This document shows, in pieces, positions 1 through 53,257 of a stretch of DNA of 64,000 nucleotides; position 1 is the first letter of the stretch, and the number at the start of each line of letters is the position of its first letter. Below the pieces are notes generated by a model. That model saw only the letters and a list, made by a program, of their open reading frames with translations, was not told where the DNA came from and did no database searches. The position numbers were made by a program, and so were the translations under genes. Source of the DNA: Rhodosorus marinus CCMP1338 (lineage: Eukaryota > Plantae > Rhodophyta); contig JAMWBK010000002.1 in the NCBI GenBank assembly GCA_029953675.1, forward strand, positions 744,001 through 808,000, read 5' to 3'.

Positions 1-933
1 CATCAGATTTAGAACCGCGTCCTAACAAGGATGGTGACATGTGGCCGAGGGGCAATCATCTTGAAACCTCAAACTTATATTTAAATTAATATAGTGGTAG
101 AGAATGTTTACTTGTCAGGGGGGTCGTGAACCGATTCTACGCTCGACCTGGTGTTCTAAAAGTTCTCAAATCTGAGCAGCATTTCCGTTTGCTTTGGCTC
201 TTCCCAACCCTCTACCCAACATGATAACAAATGTATTTTAAAATAAAAAGGCTATATACAGAGAACTAACCCCTCAAGTAAATGAACTCGAACCTAATCT
301 AAGAAATCTTTCTAAATTTGTTAAGCATGACGACGGGGAGCACTAGCAATGGATTTTGGACTCCTTCGGGATAGTGACAGGTAAACTTGATAAAGGATTT
401 CTAATCGCATATTAAGTAAATATTTTGCGTTTTTCAGTGAGGGTTGAAAGAGCAGAAATGATTTATGTGTCCTATATGGTAGTAGAGTTTCGCATCAGCC
501 ATTGATGGACGGCTCCTGGGTAGACGGTCGGGGATAAGAATCTTGTCTGGTGTTGCTGGTGCAACAGAGGTTGTGGGGGAGGTGGGGACGGGCTGACGAT
601 GTTGACTGGTATTCGTGGGGAGAGGTTGAAAAAGTGTCTGTCTCTCTTTCTCTAGTGAGTCTAGAGAGTTTTTCGGGCCATTGAGGAATTGTAGGTGTTT
701 CTTTGTTGTAGCCTTTTTTGGGAAGGGCTATACCGGGCATTGCCGAGAGTCGCTGGGATGCGACGCGGTTGGGTTGAGCAGGACGGGATTTGGTTTATGG
801 GGCTGGTAGTTGGTGGAGTGAACTCGGCTGATTTAGGTACTTTTGTGGTTGACGAGAGACTTGCCTTGGCCAAGAACTTGGCGTTCTCTTTCGAAAGGAA
901 GGAGGCATTCGGATAGCACGGTCATAAACGGAG

Positions 934-3681
934 ATGGCGCCGGTGCCACTTGAGCCTAAAGTATCTGGCGAGGTGAGTTGATTTACTTAAGAACTGGGTG
1001 AAGCAAGTTCTACGGACGGATCACGAACTGCTGGCTGACAGATCGTCAATTCGTTGAACCAGAATTTCTCGCAGACACCTACTATTTCTAACTCATCCGG
1101 GTTTGAGGGACCAGAGAAGAGGCTGGAGATATATTTTCGACCTGTGGATGACCTGACAAAGGTCATCGAGTTGACGGAGGGGCTTCGAACAGTTTCCAGG
1201 AATGAATGGACGGACATATTGCGCGATGCTCAATGCAGCATCTTGTCCGCAAAGAGCAACGATTATTTTGACTCTTATCTTCTGTCAGAAAGCTCCCTCT
1301 TCATTTTTTCCACGAAGTTTATGATTAAGACGTGTGGAACAACTACTCTGTTGAAAGTGGTGAGTAGTTTTCAAGATTTGAGCAGCGCATTGCGTTCAGT
1401 GAAACTCAACAACGGCTTTGGTGCTTCCTCTACAACAGATCCCGAGAGTTAATGCGGTTACTGAAAGGTTGGGCCTGGAGATGGACTATATGCAATATTC
1501 CCGTGCAAGCTTTACGTTTCCGTAAGCTGGTTGCACAATTGTGTTCGAATTACTGGAAAATTCGCTAAATGAAAATTCTCGCTGATCAATGTCTTAGGAA
1601 CCAGCAGCTGCACCCGCACACGTCGTTCCAGTCAGAAGTGGACTACTTAAACCGCTTCTTCAAAGGTGAATCGTACGTTCTCGGAACTCCGGACGGGGCT
1701 ACCAAGTGGCATCTCTATATTGCCGGAGATTGTCGAATCCCAACCAACGATCAAGGTTTTGAAATTTTCATGTTCGATCTGGACGAGCGTTGCATGAGTC
1801 ACTTTTTCAACGTGGACGCGGACGGAACGAAAAGGTTTGGCAGTGCTCACGGGGCCACCACGTCAGAAAATAGTGGAATCACTCGTATCATGTCCGAGGG
1901 ATCGATTCTGGACGCGTACAACTTTGAACCATGTGGCTACTCCATGAACGGACTTGAGAATAGCAGCTATTATACGATTCACATAACGCCGGAACCTCAG
2001 TGCTCCTACGTTTCGTTCGAGTGCATTCTACCGCTGGATGACTTCACCAGCATCCTTGCAACTGTTCTGGACGTGTTTAAACCTGGAAAATTTAGTATTG
2101 CCCTGCATGCGGATATAACCGCCCCAGCCGCAGTGTACGGTCTGAAGGAGTTGTTGGGCAAGGAATCTCCATGGGGATACCAGGCTGTAGGTGACAGCAC
2201 TTTCCTCCGCATGAAGACGGTCACTGGCCACGCTGTGTCTGCAACTGTCTGCAGTTATGTCGCTGAGAGGACTCTTCCCGTACCGACACCGGTCTTGAAG
2301 TCACCAGGACTGCGAACGCCGCGTCCTTTGCTCGACTTTAACGGGGGTTTGAAAGAGGTACTTTTTTTCGGAGCAACGTTGGGTTTTGTTCCACGATCTA
2401 TGTTATTGATAGCTAATTTCATCTGTGCAGGTCGCGATGACGTACCGAGCAGAGTTGGCCACAAAAGGCACCAGCGTGGAGGACTTTGTTGCTGAACTTA
2501 TAACAAAAAGGACTGTAATCGAGCATCCTATCTCTTTCGTTGACCTCACAGCCGTCAGCGATCGAATCGATCTCGTTCTGCAGAAGATGACGAAGCACCA
2601 TGAGTTGCGCTGTTCAGTCCAGCCGAGCTCTAATCCTGCCATTCTGAGGTTGCTCGACCATGCCGGCTGTATTTTCGACGCAAGCTCGCTGTCAGACCTT
2701 CGGAGGCTTCGAAGAGCTGGCATTAATCCTAAGCATGCAGTTCTGACGAATCCGATCTGTGGTCTAAGCAACGTCTCGAAGGCGAAGGAACTCTTCCATA
2801 CCATGCGCATATTTGATGATATGGACGAACCAACGGTGAGGCGAATAGGGTCCTCTTTCCCCGGCGCTGCCTTTGAGCTCCGTCTAATGAACCCTTTGGA
2901 GGTCTCGGTCGAATCCGTGATAGACACAGCTGAAGCCACGATCATGAACGCGATCAATGCGGGGCTCGAGCCTAGTGGAATCAGTTTTCAACTCCCTGAG
3001 GAGAGGGGCTGCAAACCGGAGGAATTCAGGAGAGCATTGGAGATTGCACACCGGCTCGTCGCAGGGTTTTTGAGGCCGGAGTGTCCCATTCCCCCTCATA
3101 AGGCTAGAGGAATTCGCCGGTTGTGCGCTGGATCGTCATTCCCCGGAGCGTCGTCTTTCTCCTGTGAAGAGTTTTCGTCTGGCGTCCGAACTGCTCTTGA
3201 CCTCGCGGACGAGTTCTTCCCACCGAGCAGCGGCATAGCAGTTGGACTAGATCCCGGAAGCTTTCTTGTTTCCTCGTCGCACTCGCTTTTGCTATCCATT
3301 GTTGCTCGACGGGATGTCCGGGAGGGAGGATTCGCGACTTACTACGTGAACGACGGGGTGTACGGGTCCCTCGCACGGCTGAAGGATCCGGCGAAGCGCA
3401 CATCGCAGGTTGCAGACCCGGTCTGCTTTGTTGGCGGCTCAAAGCAACCCTGCAAAGTGATTGGTCCCAGTTGCGAGGATGCCGACGAGCTTTGGTCTGG
3501 AGAACTCCCCCGACTGCAAGTTGGAAATTGTCTTCTGTTCCCCCGCCTTGGAGCAACGGTAGATGCGGACCCGTCCAAACACAGCATCGTTTACTTCCTC
3601 GCTACAGGGGATGGCCAACCGCAGGCCCCGCCTTCCATGCGGCTGCACGGCCATGGAAACGTCGTGAGCAGCATCTGCTAG
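934..3681 (+). CDS. SAMDC: S-adenosylmethionine decarboxylase proenzyme fused to a C-terminal ornithine decarboxylase-like (pseudoenzyme) domain; 5 exons
   Basis: Exons 934-972, 1042-1359, 1439-1521, 1598-2357, 2431-3681; all introns GT..AG and phase-compatible. AdoMetDC motifs GFEGPEKRLE, YLLSE|SSLF (pyruvoyl cleavage site), KTCGTT, YSRASFTFP, FEPCGYSMNG, TIHITPE. C-terminal fold-type III motifs YYVNDGVYGS, GPSCED, FFPPSSGI. Confidence 0.9.
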
Positions 3682-4492
3682 GTTTTGCCGAAGGCTGCTC
3701 AGTTATTATTAGGCTGTCGCTTTATTTTGTTTTAAAAATAAAAATTGGATTTGTGCAATCGAGTCAAGGCTGTCAAGCTACCTGTTCCACTTTAAATGTG
3801 GTATGTTATTCTGTGCGTACTCCACCTAAGCACTTCCTCCCCTCACCCTCCTCAACCTGCTTGCTTGCAGCCTTTGGTGGGTGGGTATTCCCAAGCTCTA
3901 GACAAAAGGCTAATAATTACTATTGTTCAATCACTCGTATATCGTTTCATAGATATTCAAGAGCCGACGAGAATAATTACGATTATACTATATATGTTTT
4001 ACAAATAATAAATTAAATTAAGCTACATCATTTGTATTATTTAAAGATGATATATTTATATCTTTTTGTGAAATTATTGTGACATCTAATAAAATATTTG
4101 GTTTATACTGGTAAAACTAATTCAATATTGTTTATTTATTATGGTATGTCTTTTATTGATTCCGCAGGTTTTGGACGCTGTCAATGGTTTTGAAGTCGCT
4201 GGGGTAGACAGAGTTTGGATGGAGGGGGCTGATTGTAGAAGGTAAGAAGAAATGCTCTCCTCTTTTAGGAGAGAAAAGAGCAAAGGGGTGATGGAGAATT
4301 CAGTAACGTGAAGTCAATATATTTAAGCAACGTGAAAAGAACGAGTTTTCTGAAGAAGACTCTTGAAACGACTTCGCCGGTAGCAGTCGGGAGAACTGAG
4401 GCTGGACGGGGTTAGGGCTTCTAGAAGGGGCGGCAAGCGAGGCTTTTCCTGACTAGTTGAGAACCTTGCTCGATTGGAGCACAGTCCTGGAC

Positions 4493-5241
4493 ATGCAAGG
4501 ATTCGGATTCAAGGTTAAAGGCCGTAAAGGTCAACAAACTGCGACGAAAAGCAATCAAAACGATGGGTTCAACGCGGAAGAAGACGACGATGAGAGGGGA
4601 ATCGCTGACGGAAGAAAGTACGTTGCCACAGTAGGACTGGAGGAGAACGAAGAAAAGAAGGAATTACAGGACAAGGTAGAAGACCGTATTATTCCTGTCG
4701 TTACCAAGGATAGCGGATCGTCACAGATCGAACGGTTGATGAAGAAGAGGCAGCAGTACGCAACACCCTTCATCGATAAGCCTCCGAGCATCGTGAACTA
4801 ACTACATCGCAACATTTACGGAATTTCTTCGAACTCTTAGGCTTAAACAGGAAGGAATTTCAATGGACGAGGATGCAATTTTCAGACGAGACATTGAATC
4901 TCTACCGGAAACCTCTGCGGACAGTTACAACAGGCTTCCAGTTGAAAACTTTGGAAAGGTGCGGAAGTCCGGAGATTTCAGAAAATCCAATAAAAACCCG
5001 GAGAGCACATGAGAAGTTCTATCTCAACTTTGGGTTTTTGTGTCATCTTCAGATGCTGCTGAAAGGGATGGGATGGCAGGAAGGCACTGACAAGCACGTC
5101 GAGGTGAAGCAGCCGAAGATACGACAGCCGAGATTAGGCCTGGGTGCAACGCCACTACCTCCAGATGAGGCGAAGCAGAAGAGAAAATTGGACAAGATAA
5201 AACTCGCGAAGATGGCTGCAAGCGTGGACAAGAAAACGTAA
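4493..5241 (+). CDS. Spp2/GPKOW/MOS2-like G-patch spliceosomal protein
   Basis: Exons 4493-4755, 4841-4958, 5053-(5237/5241) join in frame to give LPVENFGKMLLKGMGWQEG...PRLGLGA, a G-patch of the Spp2 type. Confidence 0.8.
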
Positions 5242-5440
5242 TCATCTCGCAAGAAAACAAACAACGGAGAAAATCTTTCCTTACCCGTTAAGAAACGCGT
5301 AGACTTTCAGCGTCAATAACGTGTTTGGGTGACGCCGTGTCCTTTCATTCCAGTGCAGAGATCCTCGTTTGGTTTGGAAGGAAGGTCAACGTGATCAGTC
5401 ATTTTCTCAGCAATTCCCTTTCGTATTGTTCCGTTTCCAG

Positions 5441-6142
5441 GAAAACTGGTGCAGAGAACGGAGGCAGTGGGCAGGATCGGTCAAATGAAAGGTATGAAGA
5501 TTGCTTTTGCCTCTCTGTGAAAGAGTCTTTCTGCGGTGCTCAGCTTGGCTTCTTGGGATTTTGACGTATGTGCAGGGATCGGATAAGTTGCGGTGGTGGT
5601 GATGCTGGTTCGCCCCAAGTGGATGTGAAGGATCTCGCGGAGGATCGGCGTGAAGGGAATGGAGTAGGCCCCGGGCAGGTTGGTAATGGCCGCGACCGCA
5701 ACCGTGAGCGATATCACGACTTTGGTGGCCATCGGAGGCGGGATAGAGAGAGAGATAGGGGACGACAGAGTGATAAGAAAGGGTACAGAGATAGAGACAG
5801 AGAGAGGGATAGAGACCGAGGGCGGGACAGCGAAAGGGATCGAGAGCGGGACAAAGTCAGGGATAGGGATACAGGCAGAGGAAGGGACAGCGACAGAGGC
5901 AGAGATAGAGCATGGGATTCAGAGAGAGGCGACAAAAGGGACAGGTACAGGGAAAGGGAAAGGGAAAGGGAAAGGGACAGGGACAAGGACAGGGACAAGG
6001 GCAGGGACAAGGGTAGGGACAAGGACAGGGACAAGGACAGGGACAGGGACACACATAGAGACAAGGACAGGAACAGAGAAAGAGACCGAGACAGGGACCG
6101 AGACAGGGGCCGAGACAGGGACAGGGACAGGGATAGGAACTT

Positions 6143-6213
<71 letters not shown>

Positions 6214-6317
6214 CACATAGAGACAAGGACAGGGACTCAGAAAGAGGTCTAGACCGGCGAAGGGATAGAGGAAGCGAAAGAGGAAAGGACAGGGACACAG
6301 AAAGGGATAGATCCTGA
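5441..6317 (+). CDS. Arg/Asp-rich (RD) low-complexity exons, probably the C-terminal part of the G-patch protein
   Basis: Donor gtaatc at 5238 to acceptor ttccag at 5440 is phase-compatible, as is intron 5492-5575. The ORF to 6317 is (DR/ER)n. No independent in-frame ATG model fits as well. Confidence 0.55.
5690..6310 (+). repeat. Coding hexanucleotide microsatellite (GACAGG)n encoding Asp-Arg
   Basis: Degenerate GACAGG/GATAGA units with a perfect run of ~11 copies at 6144-6209. Confidence 0.95.
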
Positions 6318-45500: not shown

Positions 45501-48500
45501 GGAAGTAAGCCAGGGGTCGCTCAAACTGGAAACCGGCTTTCCGTCGTTCCCGGCAGGCGCACAGTCGGAATCGGAGAAGTTGATGACAACGATGCTGTTG
45601 GAATCGAGTAAGCCGGCCGACCTGAACGCGATGTTAATGAAATCGCTGCGGAGCTTAGTACAGGTCAATCCGAGCATTGCGCATCAAACTTGGATTCAAC
45701 TATTTCCTAGAGCATGGGAAAACTTGGAGGTGAGGACCCAGAACCTCTTGTTTCTCCAAGCAGACATCCCTAAGTTTTCTTCTTGGTATTTCCGAACAGG
45801 AACCGGTGTTGTCCAATTTGGAGAGGGGGCTTTGCCAGCTGCTTGCCAAGGAGTATCACGGAAGTCAAATGAATCGTGACCGAAACGTTATCCAGTCCTG
45901 GCTTGAGGGCTTGATTCGATTGGACCGTCCCCCAGTGCTGGATGCGAATCTTATTGCTCACCTAGCCCAGCGGTTCAACTCGTGGCATTGTGGTTGTCAA
46001 TTGCTAGAGAAACAATTGGCAGGGAATCCTTCCGACACTGACCGGGAGAATCTACAAGATGCTCTCTGCTCCCTACTTACGCAGTTGAATGAAGGTGACC
46101 TGGTAGCGGGTATTTGGAAGCAAAGAGCCAACGTTCCGGAAACGAGCTCTGGTTTGATATCCCAACTGACAGGGGATCATTCAGCCGCACAGGATTACTT
46201 CCTGGAGGTAAGGTCCATATAGTGCTGAAAGTGTCATTCCTATTTCTTAGCGGAATTTGTGCACTTGCATATTGTTGTCAGGCCATGGGAAAGGCGCAGA
46301 ATGGGCGACTTGCAAAGGATGCAAAGAAGGCCGAAGTCTTTTTGTGGGAAGAGCGATGGATCGAAAGCGCGAAGCAAATGTCTCAGTGGGATATGCTAAC
46401 CGAGTTTTCGCGCTCAGTCACTCATGCAAGCTTATTGCACGAGTGCTTATGGCGCATTCCAGAGTGGGCAGCACTTCGGGAGCTGACTTTCAAACATACG
46501 ATTGAAGACGATACGCAGCTCAGAATTTATCAAGCTTACTATCACTTGCAAGAAAACAAAGGGGATTATGCTGACCAATCCAACTCGAACAAGATTGATT
46601 ACGTAGAGCAGTCCATCGCGAGAGGGATGCAGAAGGCGTTGTATCATTGGACTTCACTTCCGCAAGGCAGTGGAATTGATCCGTTCATTCCATCGTTGGT
46701 GAAGTTTCAGCAACTCGTTGAGCTTCATGAAAGCAGTAAGATTCTAAGCGAGATGAACACCTATCTACAACCAGAAGCAAACTCGGAAAAGCCGATTGAC
46801 AACATTCGAAACTACTTTGCGATGTGGCGGGAGCGGTAATGAACGAACGCCGATGGCTTTAATCTTTGTCTTACTGCAGCCTGTTCTAAGCACTCTTGAA
46901 CTCTCTCCTACGCGCCATAGGATGCCCAACACGTGGGATGAGCCGCTCGTGTGGAGCGACTTGCTCACATGGCGCCATCATGTTTACACCGCTATAACCA
47001 ACTCAATTCAGGCCCTAAAGGATAGCGGGCTGCGGGACTATAATCAGTCGATCATGAGTTTAAGCGTCAATGAGACCGCGCATAGTGTGAACTCCTTCGC
47101 CCGGATGTGCCGTAAGCAGAACCTGCTGGATTGTTGCATCAATGCCCTGCAAGGGTTTTACCCGTATCGGAGCATGCACTACGACGACCTCTTGGTGAAG
47201 ACAAAGCAGCAAGTGAAGGCGTACTTACATGGTGAGTTCTTTCCTTACGAGCGGGCATTCAGAACCAATGCTTACGGAGGATTCTACTTGCAGGCCCCCA
47301 AAACGTGGATAACCCGTTGCAAACTGGACTGAATTTGATCAGCACGAGCGCAGTCGATCGTCTTAGTAAGCGACAGACTGCTCAGTTGTTTGCTCTGAAG
47401 GGTGACCTGTGCCGCGCGTTGGGAAATAGCGAGGAGGCAAACCAAGCTTACGCAACCGCTACCACCACCGCGCCGGAGCAGGCATCTGGCTGGTTTGCTT
47501 GGGCTCAGCATTGTGATCGCGTATATGTGGAGAATAGAAGCGACTTGTCATGGGCAGAGGCTGCCTCTGTGTGCTACTTTCAATCTGTCCGCTTTGGGTC
47601 TAGGAGGGGAAGGTATTGTCTAGCACAGTCGAATTGCTTTGCCTAGGAATTTTTGTAGCCGCAGCGCTGAGGCGATTCTCTCTTTATGCAATAGGCGGCA
47701 CTTGTCTCGAGTTTTGAACTTCCTATCGCAAGGTGCTGATGTGCGCCGATCAAAGAAGGGCCCTGACAGAGGAAAGGACGCTTCTGTTGGGGTTCCGTCC
47801 TTTGCAAACCAAACCCCACAGCAGACTGCCGAAGATCCTAAGGACATTGAGAAGGGTGCAGATGGAGGAGGAATATTTGTCGTATTTGAACGTTTCCAGG
47901 ATGTACTACCACCTTGGGTATGGTTGCCATGGATACAACAGTTGATTCCCATGCTTGCGAGAGGAGAAGCCCTGCAAGCACGAGCCATACTTATCCGCGT
48001 CGCTCAGCAATATCCGCAGGCAATTTTTTACCAGCTCAGGGCATTTTCGGAGGAATACAAGCCTGCAGGGCGCGCGACGCCCGGGTTTACCGCTGAAGCT
48101 TTGAATGCGCCGAGGGCGAACACTCAGTACTTGCTCCCCAGTGCATCGCAATCAAAACGAGGGGAGAGCCTGCAAACTGCCCAGCAGGATGCAGCAAAGT
48201 CGAAGGAGAATGCGGCGAAAAGCTTACAAACGCAGCAGGCAGCTGTGCGGGCCGTCAAGAGTGCCGAGAATATGAAGGGGGCTGCAGCGGCAAAGGCGCA
48301 GAAGCAGTTAGAGGAGTTAGCCAAAAAGAGACAGGAATTGCAAAGAAAAGCGCAAGAGGATCAAAAGAAGCTCCAGGAGCTTACCAGACAGGAAGGAAAG
48401 TTGGCAGAGTCAGCGGCTTCTATGAACGTTGCCGCCAAGACTCCGTTTGATCATGCAGACGTTATTCTGGCACAGCTCGTGAGGCACAATTCTCAAACCC

Positions 48501-51500
48501 TCTACTTTGAGCTAGAGGCAATCTGCCAGCACATGGCGGAAAGGTTGAAGCCGGTCGCGGAAGAAACACTCCTGGGTCTCATGAACGCGTTACTGCATAG
48601 ATGCTATCATTTGCAAGCGCCAGGAAAGGAGGTCGGGCAACCGTTGAGGACTGCCCTGGAGGAGGTTTCAAGAATGTACTTTGGCACTCATACGCAGAGG
48701 TCGACAGCCGGAGCTCCACACAACGTTCAGGGACTGCGGACCGGCAGTCCCCAAGCGCAGGCAGCAGGGCACCCACCTTCTGCTAAAATCCCTCGAACTG
48801 ATGTAGCCAATGGGCGGCCAATGGAACCTATTCAGCATGAGTCCAAGGTGGAGGCGACCTTGGTGCCCTCAGCCCGAGAGCAACCCGGAACCGCGCAGCA
48901 GCCCGGGCAGAATCTCCCGCCTGGTTCGTCGACCACTGGGGCAAATTCGACCTCTGCACAGCCGGCTGCGGGAATGCATAGACCTCAGCTTATGCGGACA
49001 ACTCAAGCAATAACGCAAGGCGTTGGGCTCGCGGCTCCTGTTCTGGCAGTGGAAGCAGCCCAGAAATCTGCACAGGCTCAGCGGAGATTCCCGGCAACAC
49101 AACCAACGCAGACAACAAAGGCTCTGCAAGGAACGCAGGTGCCGCAAGCGATGCGCGGACCGCAGGCAATGCAGTCGAACGTGCCCATGGGAGCACAAGC
49201 TCAACAAGCTCAACAAGCTCAACAAGCTCAACAAGCTCAACAAGCTCAACAAGCCGAACAACTTCAACAAGTTCAACAAGCTCAACAAGTTCAACAAGCT
49301 CAACAAGCTCAACGGGCTCAACAAGCTCAACAAGCTCAACAAGCTCAACAAGCGCAACAAGCTCAACAAGCCCGGCAGCCACCGCCAACGCAGCCAACAC
49401 AGCCAACACAGCCAACGCAGCCAACGCAGCCGACGCAACCAACGCAGCCGACGCAGCCAACGCAGCCGACGCAGCCAACGCAGCCAACGCAGCCAACGCA
49501 GCCAACGCAGCCAACGCAGCCAACGCAGCCAACGCAGCCAACGCAGCCAACGCAGCCAACGCAGCCAACGCAGCCAACGCAGCCAACGCAGCCAACGCAG
49601 CCAACGCAGCCAACGCAGCCAACGCAGCCAACGCAGCCAACGCAGCCAACGCAGCCAACGCAGCCAACGCAGCCAACGCAGCCAACGCAGCCAACGCAAC
49701 CGTTGCAGCCACCGCAGCCAACGCAACCGTTGCAGCCACCGCAACCAATGCAGCCACTGCCACCAACGCAGCCACCGCAGCCAGCGTCACCAACGCAGCC
49801 AACGCAAGCAGCGTCACCAGCGCAGCCAACGCAAGCAACGCAGCCAGCGCAGCCAGCGCAGCCAGCGCAGCCAACGCAGGAATCGCAGGTACCAGAGCCA
49901 TGGCAGCCAACGCAACCACAGCCAGCACCACCGGTGCCAGAACATTCGCAGTCAGAGGGCGGGCAAGAACAAGAGACAGCACAGATACAGAACGCGAAGG
50001 AAGCACCGCAGCCATCGGCACCAACGGCACCAACACCAGCAACGCCGTCACGGCAGCCAGCGCCAACCCAGCCGACGCCTGCAACAGCAACACCTGCTAG
50101 AGCAACGCCTGCACCAGCAACGCCTGCACCAGCAACGCCTGCACCAGCAACGCCTGCACCAGCAACGCCTGCACCAGCAACGCCTGCGACAGCAACGCCT
50201 GCGACAGCAACGCCTGCAACCGCAACGCCTGCAACCGCAACGCCTGCAACCGCAACGCCTGCAACCGCAACGCCTGCAACCGCAACGCCTGCAACCGCAA
50301 CGCCTGCAACCGCAACTCCTGCAACGGCAACGCCTGCAACGGCAACGCCCGCAACGGCAACGCCTGCAACGGCAACGCCCGCAACGGCAACGCCTGCAAC
50401 AGCAACGCCTGCAACAGCAACGCCTGCAACAGCAACGCCTGCAACAGCAACGCCTGCAACCGCAACGCCTGCAACCGCAACGCCTGCAACCGCAACGCCT
50501 GCAACCGCAACGCCTGCAACCGCAACACCGGCAACAGCAACGCCTGCAACAGCACCGCCTACAACAGCAACGCCGTCACAGCAGCCAGCACCAACCCAGC
50601 CGACGCCTGCAACCGCAACGCCCGCACTAGCAACGCCTGCAACCGCAACGCCTGCAACCGCAACGCCTGCAACCGCAACGCCTGCAACCGCAACGCCTGC
50701 AACAGCAACGCCTGCAACCGCAACGCCTGCAACCGCAACGCCTGCAACCGCAACGCCTGCAACCGCAACGCCTGCAACCGCAACGCCTGCAACCGCAACG
50801 CCTGCAACCGCAACACCGGCAACCGCAACGCCCGCGACCTCAACACCTGCAACCGCCATACCTGCAACCGCAACGCCCGCGACCGCAACACCTGCAACCG
50901 CAACGCCCGCGACCGCAACACCTGCAACCGCCATACCTGCAACAGCAACGCCTGCAACAGCAACGCCTGCAACAGCAACGCCTGCAACAGCAGCAACAGT
51001 AACGCCTGCAACGACAACGCCAGAAACGGCAACGCCTGCAACAGCAACGCTTGCAACAGCAACGCCTGCAACAGCAACGCTTGCAACAGCAACGCCTGCA
51101 ACGACAACGCGTACAACAGCAACACCTGCAACAACAACGTCTGTAACAACAACGCCTGCAACAACAACGTCTGTAACAACAACGCCTGCAACAACAACGC
51201 CTGCAACAGCAACGCCTGCATTCCAGCCACAGCATCCAATACCGAGTCATGAGCAAAACGAGCCCAACGCCGGAGGAAGGAGCGTCCCGGTAACGAAGGC
51301 TTCTGAGATGGGAGTCGCGCCAGCTCGTGCAGCGACAGGGACTCAACTTGCGGAGCAGAATGTCTCGCGTCTTACACCCTACCAGAAGGAGGGAGCGGAG
51401 CCTGAGGGGCTAGGGCAAACAGTCGGCAGAAGAAATCTGCCAGCACATCGAAGCGCATCGTTACAAGGACACGGAGCACAATTGCAAGGGCAGTCTGGTC

Positions 51501-53257
51501 TTTCTCAGCAGAGTCCGCAAGGAACTGCTAGGCCTGGGATTTCTGTTGGATTGCCTCATCGAAGATCTGCCGATCCTGCCTCAGTAGGTCAGACAGGAGC
51601 GAAACGTGGTGCACCAGCTTCATGGGCCCCTGCGGGTTCGAGTGGAAGCGGAGCATCGCACGCTGCATCACCGACCCCGCACAAGATAGCGCCGTCCATC
51701 GCGGATCTCAAATTTGCTTTTGAGGCTGAGCTTGCCCCACAAACTGCCAAGGACTTTCCGAGCACGATTGAGCCATTCATAGAACGGCTCATAAAGTGGA
51801 AGGGTATATTCCAGAAAAGGGTGGATTCTATGCCAGATGTTCAGCGGCTTGAGCTTCTATGGAGGATTTTTGCGGATACTCATAACGACGTAGAAGTGTT
51901 TGGCCAGTACTTGGACATCGATGACGAACCAAACTTGGATAACCATGTCAGGATCGAGCGCTTTTCGGCGGATGTGCAGGTCGTTCGAAGGCACGCAGGA
52001 GCGTCGCGGCGAGTGAAAATTTTTGGAAGCAATGGGATAGTCAAGAGTTTTGTGCTGGAGACTAGCGTGAACGCAGCGACACAGAGATCGGAAGAACGTG
52101 CTACTCAGCTCTGCAGGCTAATAAATCGCCTTCTCGACGGAGACTGCCAGACAAGGAAGAGGAGACTGTCTATGTCTGTGCCCGTGCTTGTGCCCACAAG
52201 TCAAAATACACGGCTTGTGGGAGATGATCCATCCGCAGTTTCTCTTTCGGAAGCGTTGGAGTGGTACATGGAGCGGAAAGGCGTCACCATGGATGAACCC
52301 TTGCTTATGTTCAGGAGTGCTTTTGCCCAGATATTTGGCCCTAAGAAAAGTCAACTCCCTGCAGGAGCTCAACCATCTAGGGAAACCTACCGCGCAGCTC
52401 GCCTGGATGCATTCAAAAAGGTCTGCGATGATGTCGTCCCCGACTACTGCTTAAGTTCATGGGTTGAGAAGAGCATACCGAACGCGAACTCTTTGTTTAT
52501 GTTGAAGAAGCAAGTTGCACAGGGCATCGGCGTCAGCGGAATTCTTTGCTACGCGTTGGCTATTGGATATAGGTAATCTAGCTCGTTTCGATCATTATCT
52601 ATTGATTTGTTCACTTATCGGATCTTTTGTTTCGACATGCTGTCACTACAGGAGGCCGCAGCACATTATGCTCTCGAGGAGAACAGGGAAAATCACTCAG
52701 TCGTTCATAAGAGCAAACGTTTCGCAGGGCATCGTTCAATTTGATGAATCCGTGTACGTACCGTTCAGACTAACCCGGAACATTCACAAACTACTCGGCA
52801 ACTTCCTCGTGGACGGCGTCATGTCACTATCTATGGTGGCCGTCATCGAAGCAATTCTTCGGAACAAATCATTGTTCTCCCACTATCTTCACGCTGTGCT
52901 GAGGAACGAGCTGATGCCTCGGGCACCTGGTCGTGGTGACAGAAACGTTGCAATTGGTAAGCCGAACTTGGAGCATTCACCTGTTAGAACAATTTTGTCG
53001 TTTATGTTTGTAGTCTTATTAGTTTGCTACGTTGAACCGATCTAGGGCATAACGATTTGGACGCGGTAGAAGACAACTTGGAAAAGAGCGTGCGATATGT
53101 CTTCAGAAGGTTGGAAGGATCGACGGACACCAATGCCGCTTCCGGTTCCACGCCCGCCCCGGTGAGCGCGATCTCTCGCGTAGAGGAATTACTGGCTTCT
53201 GCTCAGAACCAGCAGGCCCAAAGTCAAATGGAACCTAGCTGGCACGCTTGGTTCTAA
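36526..53257 (+). CDS. TRRAP: TRRAP/Tra1 (PIKK-family pseudokinase scaffold of SAGA/NuA4), multi-exon
   Basis: N-terminus RLKLVNEVRENIE...KPQF...RHLVLDILHR, ENEENAVICLRIIFDL, VKTVSFLSY, LGLTTLEFWIDNL, ILGKLGGRNRR. FAT region WIESAKQMSQWDML and WLPWIQQL. PI3K-like domain VPFRLTRNI and FATC end MEPSWHAWF*. Confidence 0.95.
49193..49369 (+). repeat. Coding 9-bp repeat (GCTCAACAA)n encoding (AQQ)n
   Basis: Directly visible tandem units within the long TRRAP exon. Confidence 0.95.
49385..49699 (+). repeat. Coding 9-bp repeat (CCAACGCAG)n encoding ~35 x PTQ
   Basis: 315 bp of near-perfect units; degenerate continuation to ~49880. Confidence 0.95.
50080..51220 (+). repeat. Coding 15-bp repeat (GCAACGCCTGCAACC/A)n encoding (ATPAT)n
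   Basis: About 1.1 kb of pentapeptide units with subtype blocks (APATP, ATATP, TTSVT). Confidence 0.95.

Follow-up and report, generated by a model that had tools for sequence, protein, structure and literature searches.

A widespread AdoMetDC-ODC fusion in the red alga Rhodosorus marinus with a conserved, probably inactive ODC half

Why would a gene for S-adenosylmethionine decarboxylase (AdoMetDC) carry, in the same reading frame, a domain with the fold of ornithine decarboxylase (ODC) that seems no longer able to act as a decarboxylase? The question is raised by a locus in a 64,000-nucleotide stretch of the genome of Rhodosorus marinus CCMP1338 (assembly GCA_029953675.1, contig JAMWBK010000002.1, positions 744,001 to 808,000 of the forward strand), hereafter the window, in whose numbering all coordinates are given. 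The gene, at 934-3681 on the plus strand, is the AdoMetDC gene NDN08_007560 of this alga (Rhodophyta, Stylonematophyceae). A preliminary description, made from the sequence alone, had seen in it an intact AdoMetDC joined through a proline-rich linker to an inactive ODC-like domain, had taken the fusion to be an independent one and had given the ODC fold a regulatory or assembly role. Following up these claims, we think it probable, if well short of certain, that the protein descends from an old bifunctional enzyme and that its ODC module is in red algae now a pseudoenzyme, probably serving in dimerisation or regulation.

Five exons, separated by four GT-AG introns of 90, 79, 76 and 73 nt, make up the gene. 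Exon 1 with the start codon (MAPVPLEPKVSGE, 934-972), intron 2 (1360-1438), exon 3 (1439-1521) and intron 3 (1522-1597) were placed by exon assembly and by the transcript contig L001 (2862 nt); the transcript evidence comes from a sister Rhodosorus strain (JGI 3300017118) with ~93% nucleotide identity to the window. Exon 2 (1063-1359) encodes N-terminal AdoMetDC sequence with the LLSE|SS site (Ser90 codon at 1291-1293) and the KTCGTT motif (Cys104), and exon 4 (1598-2357) encodes the remaining AdoMetDC, including PCGYSMNG and TIHITPE, together with the proline-rich linker (aa 365-385, window 2271-2333). Intron 4 (2358-2430, phase 0, gtactt...gctaat...tgcag) lies at the junction of the domains, and its removal fuses ...LLDFNGGLKE to VAMTYRAEL... 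at the start of exon 5 (2431-3681), which holds the ODC-fold domain (aa 394-809) and the stop codon. L001 aligns in five blocks (593-972, 1058-1359, 1438-1522, 1598-2359 and 2429-3723), the ends of which match the predicted exon borders. All four introns are absent from this contig, confirming splicing across 2357/2431 as the preliminary description had drawn it. At its minimum extent, the 5' leader of the mRNA covers 593-933 and the 3' untranslated region 3682-3723, as given by the two ends of the L001 alignment.

Intron 1 (973-1062) contains a second in-frame AG downstream of its acceptor, at 1073-1074, and an acceptor at 1074|1075, giving 805 aa, was ruled out: the GenBank model and the transcript use 1062|1063, giving 809 aa. 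The four residues added by this choice read NFSQ in the window and NVSQ in the sister strain, as seen in the GenBank protein and in open reading frames (ORFs) from MMETSP. The spliced product is residue for residue identical to KAJ8907449.1, an 809-aa 'hypothetical protein' that belongs to the 90% cluster of an 806-aa protein found in a HMMER search with the ODC-like half (93% identical, match at residues 391-806). A second contig from the same transcriptome, L002 (2935 nt), lacks introns 1-3 and is identical to L001 except that the 73-nt junction intron is kept (L002 1530-1602); it encodes a 438-aa ORF comprising AdoMetDC only, with a 45-aa tail, and the ODC-like ORF follows out of frame. In the window, the frame through an unspliced intron 4 stops at 2495, 65 nt into exon 5. 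The ORFs of three MMETSP isoforms (P0155, P0157 and P0154) begin within exon 2 or exon 3, which fits retention of upstream introns, and none of the aligned transcript contigs pointed to a separate start of transcription near 2430. The spliced ORF, the Pfam matches and the transcript bear out the single polypeptide proposed earlier and strongly indicate one mRNA and one protein product: AdoMetDC, a flexible linker and an ODC-fold domain of ~416 aa.

Comparison of the N-terminal ~360 residues with known enzymes strongly indicates a complete eukaryotic class-2 AdoMetDC. In the spliced protein, Pfam finds SAM_decarbox with E=1e-97 (327.8 bits against a cut-off of 22.2), aa 21-311 matching profile positions 2-301 of 343, and a phmmer search of the PDB reaches human AdoMetDC with E=8e-58. 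The stretch YLLSESSLF aligns with human YVLSESSMF, which makes aa 90 the predicted self-cleavage serine. The human catalytic and processing residues E8, E11, C82, S229, H243 and E247 are all conserved in the alignment and map to the motifs FEGPEK (E8, E11), KTCGTT (K80, C82), PCGYSMNG (C226, S229) and TIHITPE (H243, E247); the acidic residues of the putrescine site of the human proenzyme are likewise kept. These catalytic and processing motifs are invariant in 60 aligned fusion proteins, and the four-layer alpha-beta-beta-alpha fold matches 1msv and 1jl0 in Foldseek (E ~1e-30, target TM score 0.87-0.91). By homology, self-cleavage between Glu89 and Ser90 would produce a pyruvoyl enzyme whose small beta chain has ~10 kDa, and the alpha chain (~79 kDa) would then carry the linker and the ODC-like domain.

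The C-terminal half is recognisable as an ODC by its fold. Pfam detects the barrel domain Orn_Arg_deC_N (PF02784) in part (E=4e-7, 30.1 bits against a cut-off of 23.4) and the sheet domain Orn_DAP_Arg_deC (PF00278) in full (E=2e-8, 35.2 bits against 23), and the 416 residues match ODC and AZIN1 structures in the PDB with E ~1e-17 to 1e-18 (phmmer), values well outside what chance would give. Foldseek gave target TM scores of 0.76-0.85 to human, mouse and T. brucei ODC at ~20% identity, and of 0.76 to AZIN1; the similarity to AZIN1 is by neither method greater than that to ODC. Among the Foldseek matches were 2tod and 1szr, the K69A and dimer-interface mutant structures of ODC. A monomeric AlphaFold2 model, built from the alignment of 60 fusions, has a mean pLDDT of 83 and consists of two well-folded bodies, with disorder predicted at residues 1-25, 365-385 (the proline-rich linker) and 791-809; the ODC-like body is a TIM barrel plus a beta-sheet domain with pLDDT mostly of 85-95.

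The chemistry of the enzyme is largely missing from this fold. Functional positions, given in mammalian numbering, were read from an alignment of the ODC halves with a profile built from canonical stand-alone ODCs. The Schiff-base lysine K69 is replaced by Gln457 (codon 2620-2622 in exon 5) and by arginine in the sister strain; this position was reached by gap-free alignment from the equivalent of the GFDCAS motif, in the model it falls where the first barrel strand ends, and there is no lysine within 5 residues of that strand end. The loop that holds the phosphate of pyridoxal 5'-phosphate (PLP), G235-237, reads GSS (codons 3130-3138, exon 5), so that only G235 is kept. K169 is lost, the substitutions H197Q, S200E, E274D, R277S, D361E and Y389T are present, and there is no FNGF motif, F397 not being alignable. 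Still present are D88, R154, D320 (the Asp of the VNDGVYG motif), Y323, C360 (codon 3472-3474, exon 5), D364 and G387; Y331 and D332 lie in an LYDHA motif, in which D332 of the window aligns only with a one-residue gap. Rhodosorus keeps 6 of the 15 canonical residues scored. The sequence makes it very unlikely that this half is catalytic as a PLP decarboxylase, because the Schiff-base lysine and the phosphate-binding loop are gone, and the inactive ODC half of the preliminary description therefore stands.

The domain is nevertheless under purifying selection and is not decaying. It forms an uninterrupted ORF of 418 codons, and between the window and L001 (dS 0.22) dN/dS is 0.145 for the ODC-like half and 0.135 for the AdoMetDC core. 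Intron 4 shows no sign of extra constraint: identity between the two strains is 85% there and 92-95% in the aligned coding exons 2-5.

How far does this arrangement extend beyond Rhodosorus? A word-indexed search with only the ODC-like half as query yielded a single Tara Oceans ODC (P0001), which proved unrelated, and failed to recover even the orthologue with 93% identity; an exhaustive HMMER search and a search with the full-length protein were therefore used. An N-terminal AdoMetDC was also present on ~30 of the best 150 ODC-like representatives, and the full-length query gave >80 further proteins with PF01536 plus PF02784 and/or PF00278. In total, 122 of the sequences collected carry both domains, and 60 of these have all 15 canonical ODC residues. 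Named red algal members are Rhodosorus, Rhodochaete, two species of Porphyridium, Galdieria partita, G. sulphuraria, G. phlegrea, Pyropia vietnamensis, Gracilariopsis chorda, Gracilaria changii and Eucheuma denticulatum. Outside the red algae the fusion occurs in the glaucophytes Cyanophora and Gloeochaete, in green algae (Picocystis, Pyramimonas, Dolichomastix, a Nephroselmis-like MMETSP entry, Trebouxia and Apatococcus), in streptophyte algae (Klebsormidium, Mesotaenium, Spirogloea and Netrium), in the lycophyte Selaginella and in the Diphylleia and Leptophrys data sets. Many of these members are ORFs of assembled transcripts and are therefore not merged gene models.

The state of the ODC half follows the lineages. 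All named green-lineage members have 15 of 15 canonical residues, differing from canonical ODC only by K294R in a table of 24 positions, and the glaucophytes have 13-14; every named red alga is without K69 and without most of the barrel-side residues. The degenerate fusion was found in six red algal classes: Stylonematophyceae, Compsopogonophyceae, Porphyridiophyceae, Cyanidiophyceae (Galdieria), Bangiophyceae and Florideophyceae. The green, streptophyte, Selaginella and glaucophyte proteins share the domain order of the Rhodosorus protein, are 750-900 aa long and are 28-33% identical to it over >90% of the length; examples, from database gene models and transcript ORFs, are an 'Ornithine decarboxylase-like protein' of Klebsormidium nitens, Selaginella LOC9650684 and the proteins of Picocystis and Cyanophora. 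Unlike the Rhodosorus protein, they keep 13-15 of the 15 residues and are presumably bifunctional. In Porphyridium (P0065 / P0177), annotated as AdoMetDC proenzyme, the ODC-like half is too diverged for Pfam and was recognised only by the Rhodosorus sequence (E ~6e-14). Proteins from Leptophrys vorax, an alga-eating vampyrellid amoeba (P0190 and P0201, EukProt transcriptome), form with P0187-P0189 a separate small fusion group with a degenerate pattern of its own (R/K-V/T-R-H...D-x-E-R/Q-K, DCDDF); the Leptophrys fusion could be the amoeba's own gene or derived from its prey. The two canonical ODCs scoring best against the Rhodosorus domain, P0006 (718 aa) and P0007 (1170 aa), each contain two tandem ODC units, with two PF02784 and two PF00278 stretches.

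Because the same architecture recurs across algae, and because a relative shares the junction intron, we regard the Rhodosorus gene as one member of an old and widespread fusion family. The relative is represented by a red-alga-like genomic contig (L009) whose product is 70% identical in the AdoMetDC and 44% in the ODC-like half, with an intron at exactly the same domain junction (...ISE|gtaatg...ttcag|VATTFRA). The independent fusion of the preliminary description is not supported by this distribution, the same domain order being present in at least six red classes, glaucophytes, green and streptophyte algae, Selaginella and the Diphylleia and Leptophrys data sets. The simplest reading of the sequences is an AdoMetDC-ODC fusion of at least Archaeplastida age whose ODC half was inactivated early in red algae. 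The ancestor would have been a bifunctional enzyme; in the green and streptophyte algae, in Selaginella and in the glaucophytes both of its halves still appear to be catalytic, and in the red lineage the ODC module would have been inactivated and yet kept under purifying selection.

Phylogenies of the separate halves were made by neighbour joining with algal and unassigned sequences only, Plasmodium not being among them. In the tree of the AdoMetDC half most named red fusions cluster, with the Florideophyceae (Gracilariopsis and relatives) as a separate cluster. The stand-alone AdoMetDC of Cyanidium caldarium sits inside the red fusion group, which suggests secondary loss of the ODC module in Cyanidium. 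In the tree of the ODC domain, canonical fusion halves are mixed with stand-alone ODCs and the degenerate halves cluster, which may be real signal or long-branch attraction.

Three known systems help to place the protein. The bifunctional AdoMetDC/ODC of Plasmodium falciparum, reportedly described by Muller et al. in 2000, likewise consists of an N-terminal AdoMetDC, a hinge and a C-terminal ODC-fold domain in one polypeptide, and its AdoMetDC half is a self-processing pyruvoyl enzyme, as predicted for the alga by homology. Unlike the algal protein, it is active in both halves and has ~1400 aa with parasite-specific inserts, against 809 aa in Rhodosorus, where the ODC half lacks K69 and PLP-binding residues. 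The AZIN1 structures (3btn, 4zgz) are the top PDB match of the C-terminal half (E=2.9e-18) and also represent an ODC fold without decarboxylase activity, one employed in the control of polyamine synthesis; AZIN, in contrast, occurs in animals as a protein on its own, retains K69 and acts by sequestering antizyme. In trypanosomatids AdoMetDC is coupled to a dead partner from the polyamine pathway, a precedent for control by a pseudoenzyme (PMC5201418, PMC6221367), but this prozyme is an AdoMetDC paralogue on a separate polypeptide that activates by heterodimerisation, whereas the alga has an attached ODC homologue. AZIN and prozyme are functional analogies and not families to which the algal protein belongs.

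What, then, might the dead module do? ODC forms obligate head-to-tail dimers. In the Plasmodium protein it is the ODC halves that keep the complex assembled, and each domain modulates the other (PMC3253432). Because of these two precedents we propose that the pseudo-ODC domain has, by analogy, probably been kept as a non-catalytic assembly or regulatory module. It would retain the dimer-forming habit of ODC and pair two fusion chains or, alternatively, dock onto a free active ODC subunit, and such pairing would couple the supply of decarboxylated AdoMet to that of putrescine. A conserved upstream ORF and occasional retention of the junction intron, giving AdoMetDC alone, could add further layers of control. 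In 54 degenerate fusions the residues mostly kept are C360, D361, D364, K/R294, Y323, G387 and F397, which belong to the sheet domain and reach across the dimer, and those lost are K69, K169, H197 and G236/237 on the barrel side; this pattern supports some ODC-type interface. Of the role given in the preliminary description, the non-catalytic side agrees with the constraint measured (dN/dS 0.145), and the role itself is what we infer.

Several observations weigh against this interpretation. Some red algae can dispense with the module, since AdoMetDC stands alone in Cyanidium caldarium and in two related sequences. The neighbour-joining trees are crude, and that of the ODC domain does not resolve a single origin of the fusion. 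The reach-across residues are partly changed in Rhodosorus itself (D361E, Y389T, F397 not alignable, K169 lost), which makes the dimer argument weaker there than in Florideophyceae or Pyropia. AZIN1 keeps the GPxCDxxD and GAY motifs as well, and their conservation could be purely structural. Finally, the pTM of the AlphaFold2 model is 0.56, meaning that the mutual orientation of the halves is undefined and that the model is silent on contacts between halves or within a dimer.

The closest competitor, which we regard as possible but rather unlikely, is a heterodimer akin to that of the prozyme, in which the dead module pairs with a free ODC and donates the equivalents of Cys360 and Asp/Glu361 to the partner's PLP site, so that one composite ODC active site is physically tied to AdoMetDC and both decarboxylases are co-regulated. 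The ODC active site does span the dimer, with K69 and PLP from one chain and C360 and D361 from the other, and it is C360 (44 of the 54 degenerate fusions), D361 (47/54), D364 (50/54) and R/K294 (46/54) that are kept, along with Y323 and F397; their ODC partners K169 and D134, which face D364 and K294, are lost, as expected if only one half-interface is maintained. Such an asymmetry would arise if a dead domain docked on a live ODC barrel, and a symmetric homodimer fits it less well. For Galdieria sulphuraria, ODC accessions are listed apart from the SAMDC accession (Lin & Lin 2018, PMC6356823), but no stand-alone ODC was identified for Rhodosorus, for which no search aimed at one was made. 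Moreover, Rhodosorus has E for D361, T for Y389 and no FNGF motif, C360 is altogether lost in Galdieria, Porphyridium and Rhodochaete, and the monomeric dead ODC AZIN1 also keeps C360 and D361, so that retention of these residues need not mean complementation in trans.

The two isoforms in one transcriptome, L001 and L002, could instead point to regulated splicing, with retention of the junction intron as a switch to free AdoMetDC (438 aa in the sister strain, 434-438 aa in the window depending on the intron-1 acceptor) and the dead module attached only conditionally. The intron does separate the two domains precisely, L009 has one in the same position, and its retention leads to the early stop in exon 5; however, upstream introns are apparently retained too in the MMETSP isoforms named above, as in a general background of unspliced RNA, and intron 4 shows the lower identity between strains already described. 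We therefore read its retention as background and not as a demonstrated switch, and consider the splicing explanation improbable. Continued enzymatic activity of the ODC-like half, as a decarboxylase or as another PLP or non-PLP catalyst with different residues or another substrate, would be compatible with its well-predicted fold, with purifying selection and with the presence of D88, R154, D320, C360 and D364. Yet the Schiff-base position is not even conserved between strains (Q against R), the nearby strand end offers no alternative lysine, the phosphate glycine loop, R277, Y389, S200 and H197 are all altered, and the substitutions at active-site positions differ among red algae, which speaks for relaxed selection on the old active site and not for a new one; we hold this to be highly improbable. 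Scarcely credible, in our view, is a functionless, decaying relic, or a gene-model artefact that joins two genes: the partial Pfam match to the barrel here, the missing Pfam match of the ODC half in Porphyridium and the absence of the domain from Cyanidium would suit it, but the transcript alignment and dN/dS already contradict it, given a continuous ORF, a confidently predicted fold, a single spliced mRNA and full-length transcript-derived ORFs from many species. We thus continue to favour the kept pseudo-ODC module of a formerly bifunctional enzyme.

The leader of the mRNA contains an upstream ORF of 52 codons (758-916, plus strand; MRRGWVEQDG...ERKEAFG*) that ends 17 nt before the main ATG, and 51 of its 52 residues are the same in L001 despite a nucleotide identity of 86.6% for the leader. 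The mRNA of another red algal fusion (L006) has a 52-codon upstream ORF at 76-234 that ends in ...KRPG 18 nt before the ATG, and a Gloeochaete mRNA (L007) has one of 27 codons at 179-262, ending in ...KFKSSRFIGFSREPS. Upstream ORFs of AdoMetDC have been mentioned for red algae, and a penultimate proline is given as usual for AdoMetDC upstream ORFs (PMC2811004); the Rhodosorus peptide, ending in ...EAFG, is without it.

The remainder of the window is ordinary eukaryotic nuclear DNA with a Tra1/TRRAP gene, a PPR gene and a G-patch gene, and scans of the window for Rfam families and tRNAs found nothing. A very AT-rich island of ~200 bp (3950-4150; aataataaattaaattaagc...tttatttattatgg), conspicuous in a window of ~50% GC, lies between the AdoMetDC and G-patch genes. 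The neighbouring gene at 4457-6317 (plus strand) encodes a G-patch domain (PF12656, E=7e-7, ORF 4873-5241) and a long tail of Arg-Asp/Arg-Glu dipeptide repeats (5568-6317), and its product is probably an RNA-processing factor. The Tra1/TRRAP-like gene (ORF 47639-52576, plus strand) contains ~2.2 kb of low-complexity repeats that keep the frame and precede the PI3K-like kinase domain (~49200-51200); they are made up of (QA)n, ~50 copies of PTQ and ~100 ATPAT-like units, with a local GC content of 0.59-0.60 and an AT skew of 0.41-0.45.

The fusion already appears in annotations from across the red algae (KAJ8907449.1, KAA8494991.1 and GJQ08405.1, together with entries for G. sulphuraria, Pyropia and Gracilariopsis), and the gene model of the window is itself in GenBank and UniProt, so at the level of gene models the fusion is not new; the entries bear only the names 'hypothetical protein' or 'AdoMetDC proenzyme'. 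In full-text literature searches we found no description of AdoMetDC-ODC fusions beyond Plasmodium, and none of a consistent inactivation of the red algal ODC half or of its upkeep by selection, although an earlier mention, for example in subscription journals, is possible. It seems, then, that the fusion itself is old, widespread and annotated, and that the conserved dead half in red algae is undescribed. On a practical matter, the ODC-like half could be mistaken for a working ODC in pathway reconstructions.

An arrangement that has been called unique to Plasmodium and treated as a parasite-specific feature for drug targeting (PMC3253432) is thus common in free-living algae and reaches a land plant, Selaginella. 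If the pseudo-ODC module does serve in control, it would add to AZIN in animals and the prozyme of trypanosomatids a third, independent recruitment of dead paralogues for the regulation of polyamine synthesis, and should the heterodimer prove true, both rate-limiting decarboxylases would be united in one jointly regulated complex, a pseudoenzyme solution derived from an ancestral bifunctional enzyme that would have stayed active in green algae. Furthermore, the active fusion, the fusion with a dead domain and the apparent loss of the domain in Cyanidium would form a natural series that could be used to study how a bifunctional enzyme becomes a regulated monofunctional one.

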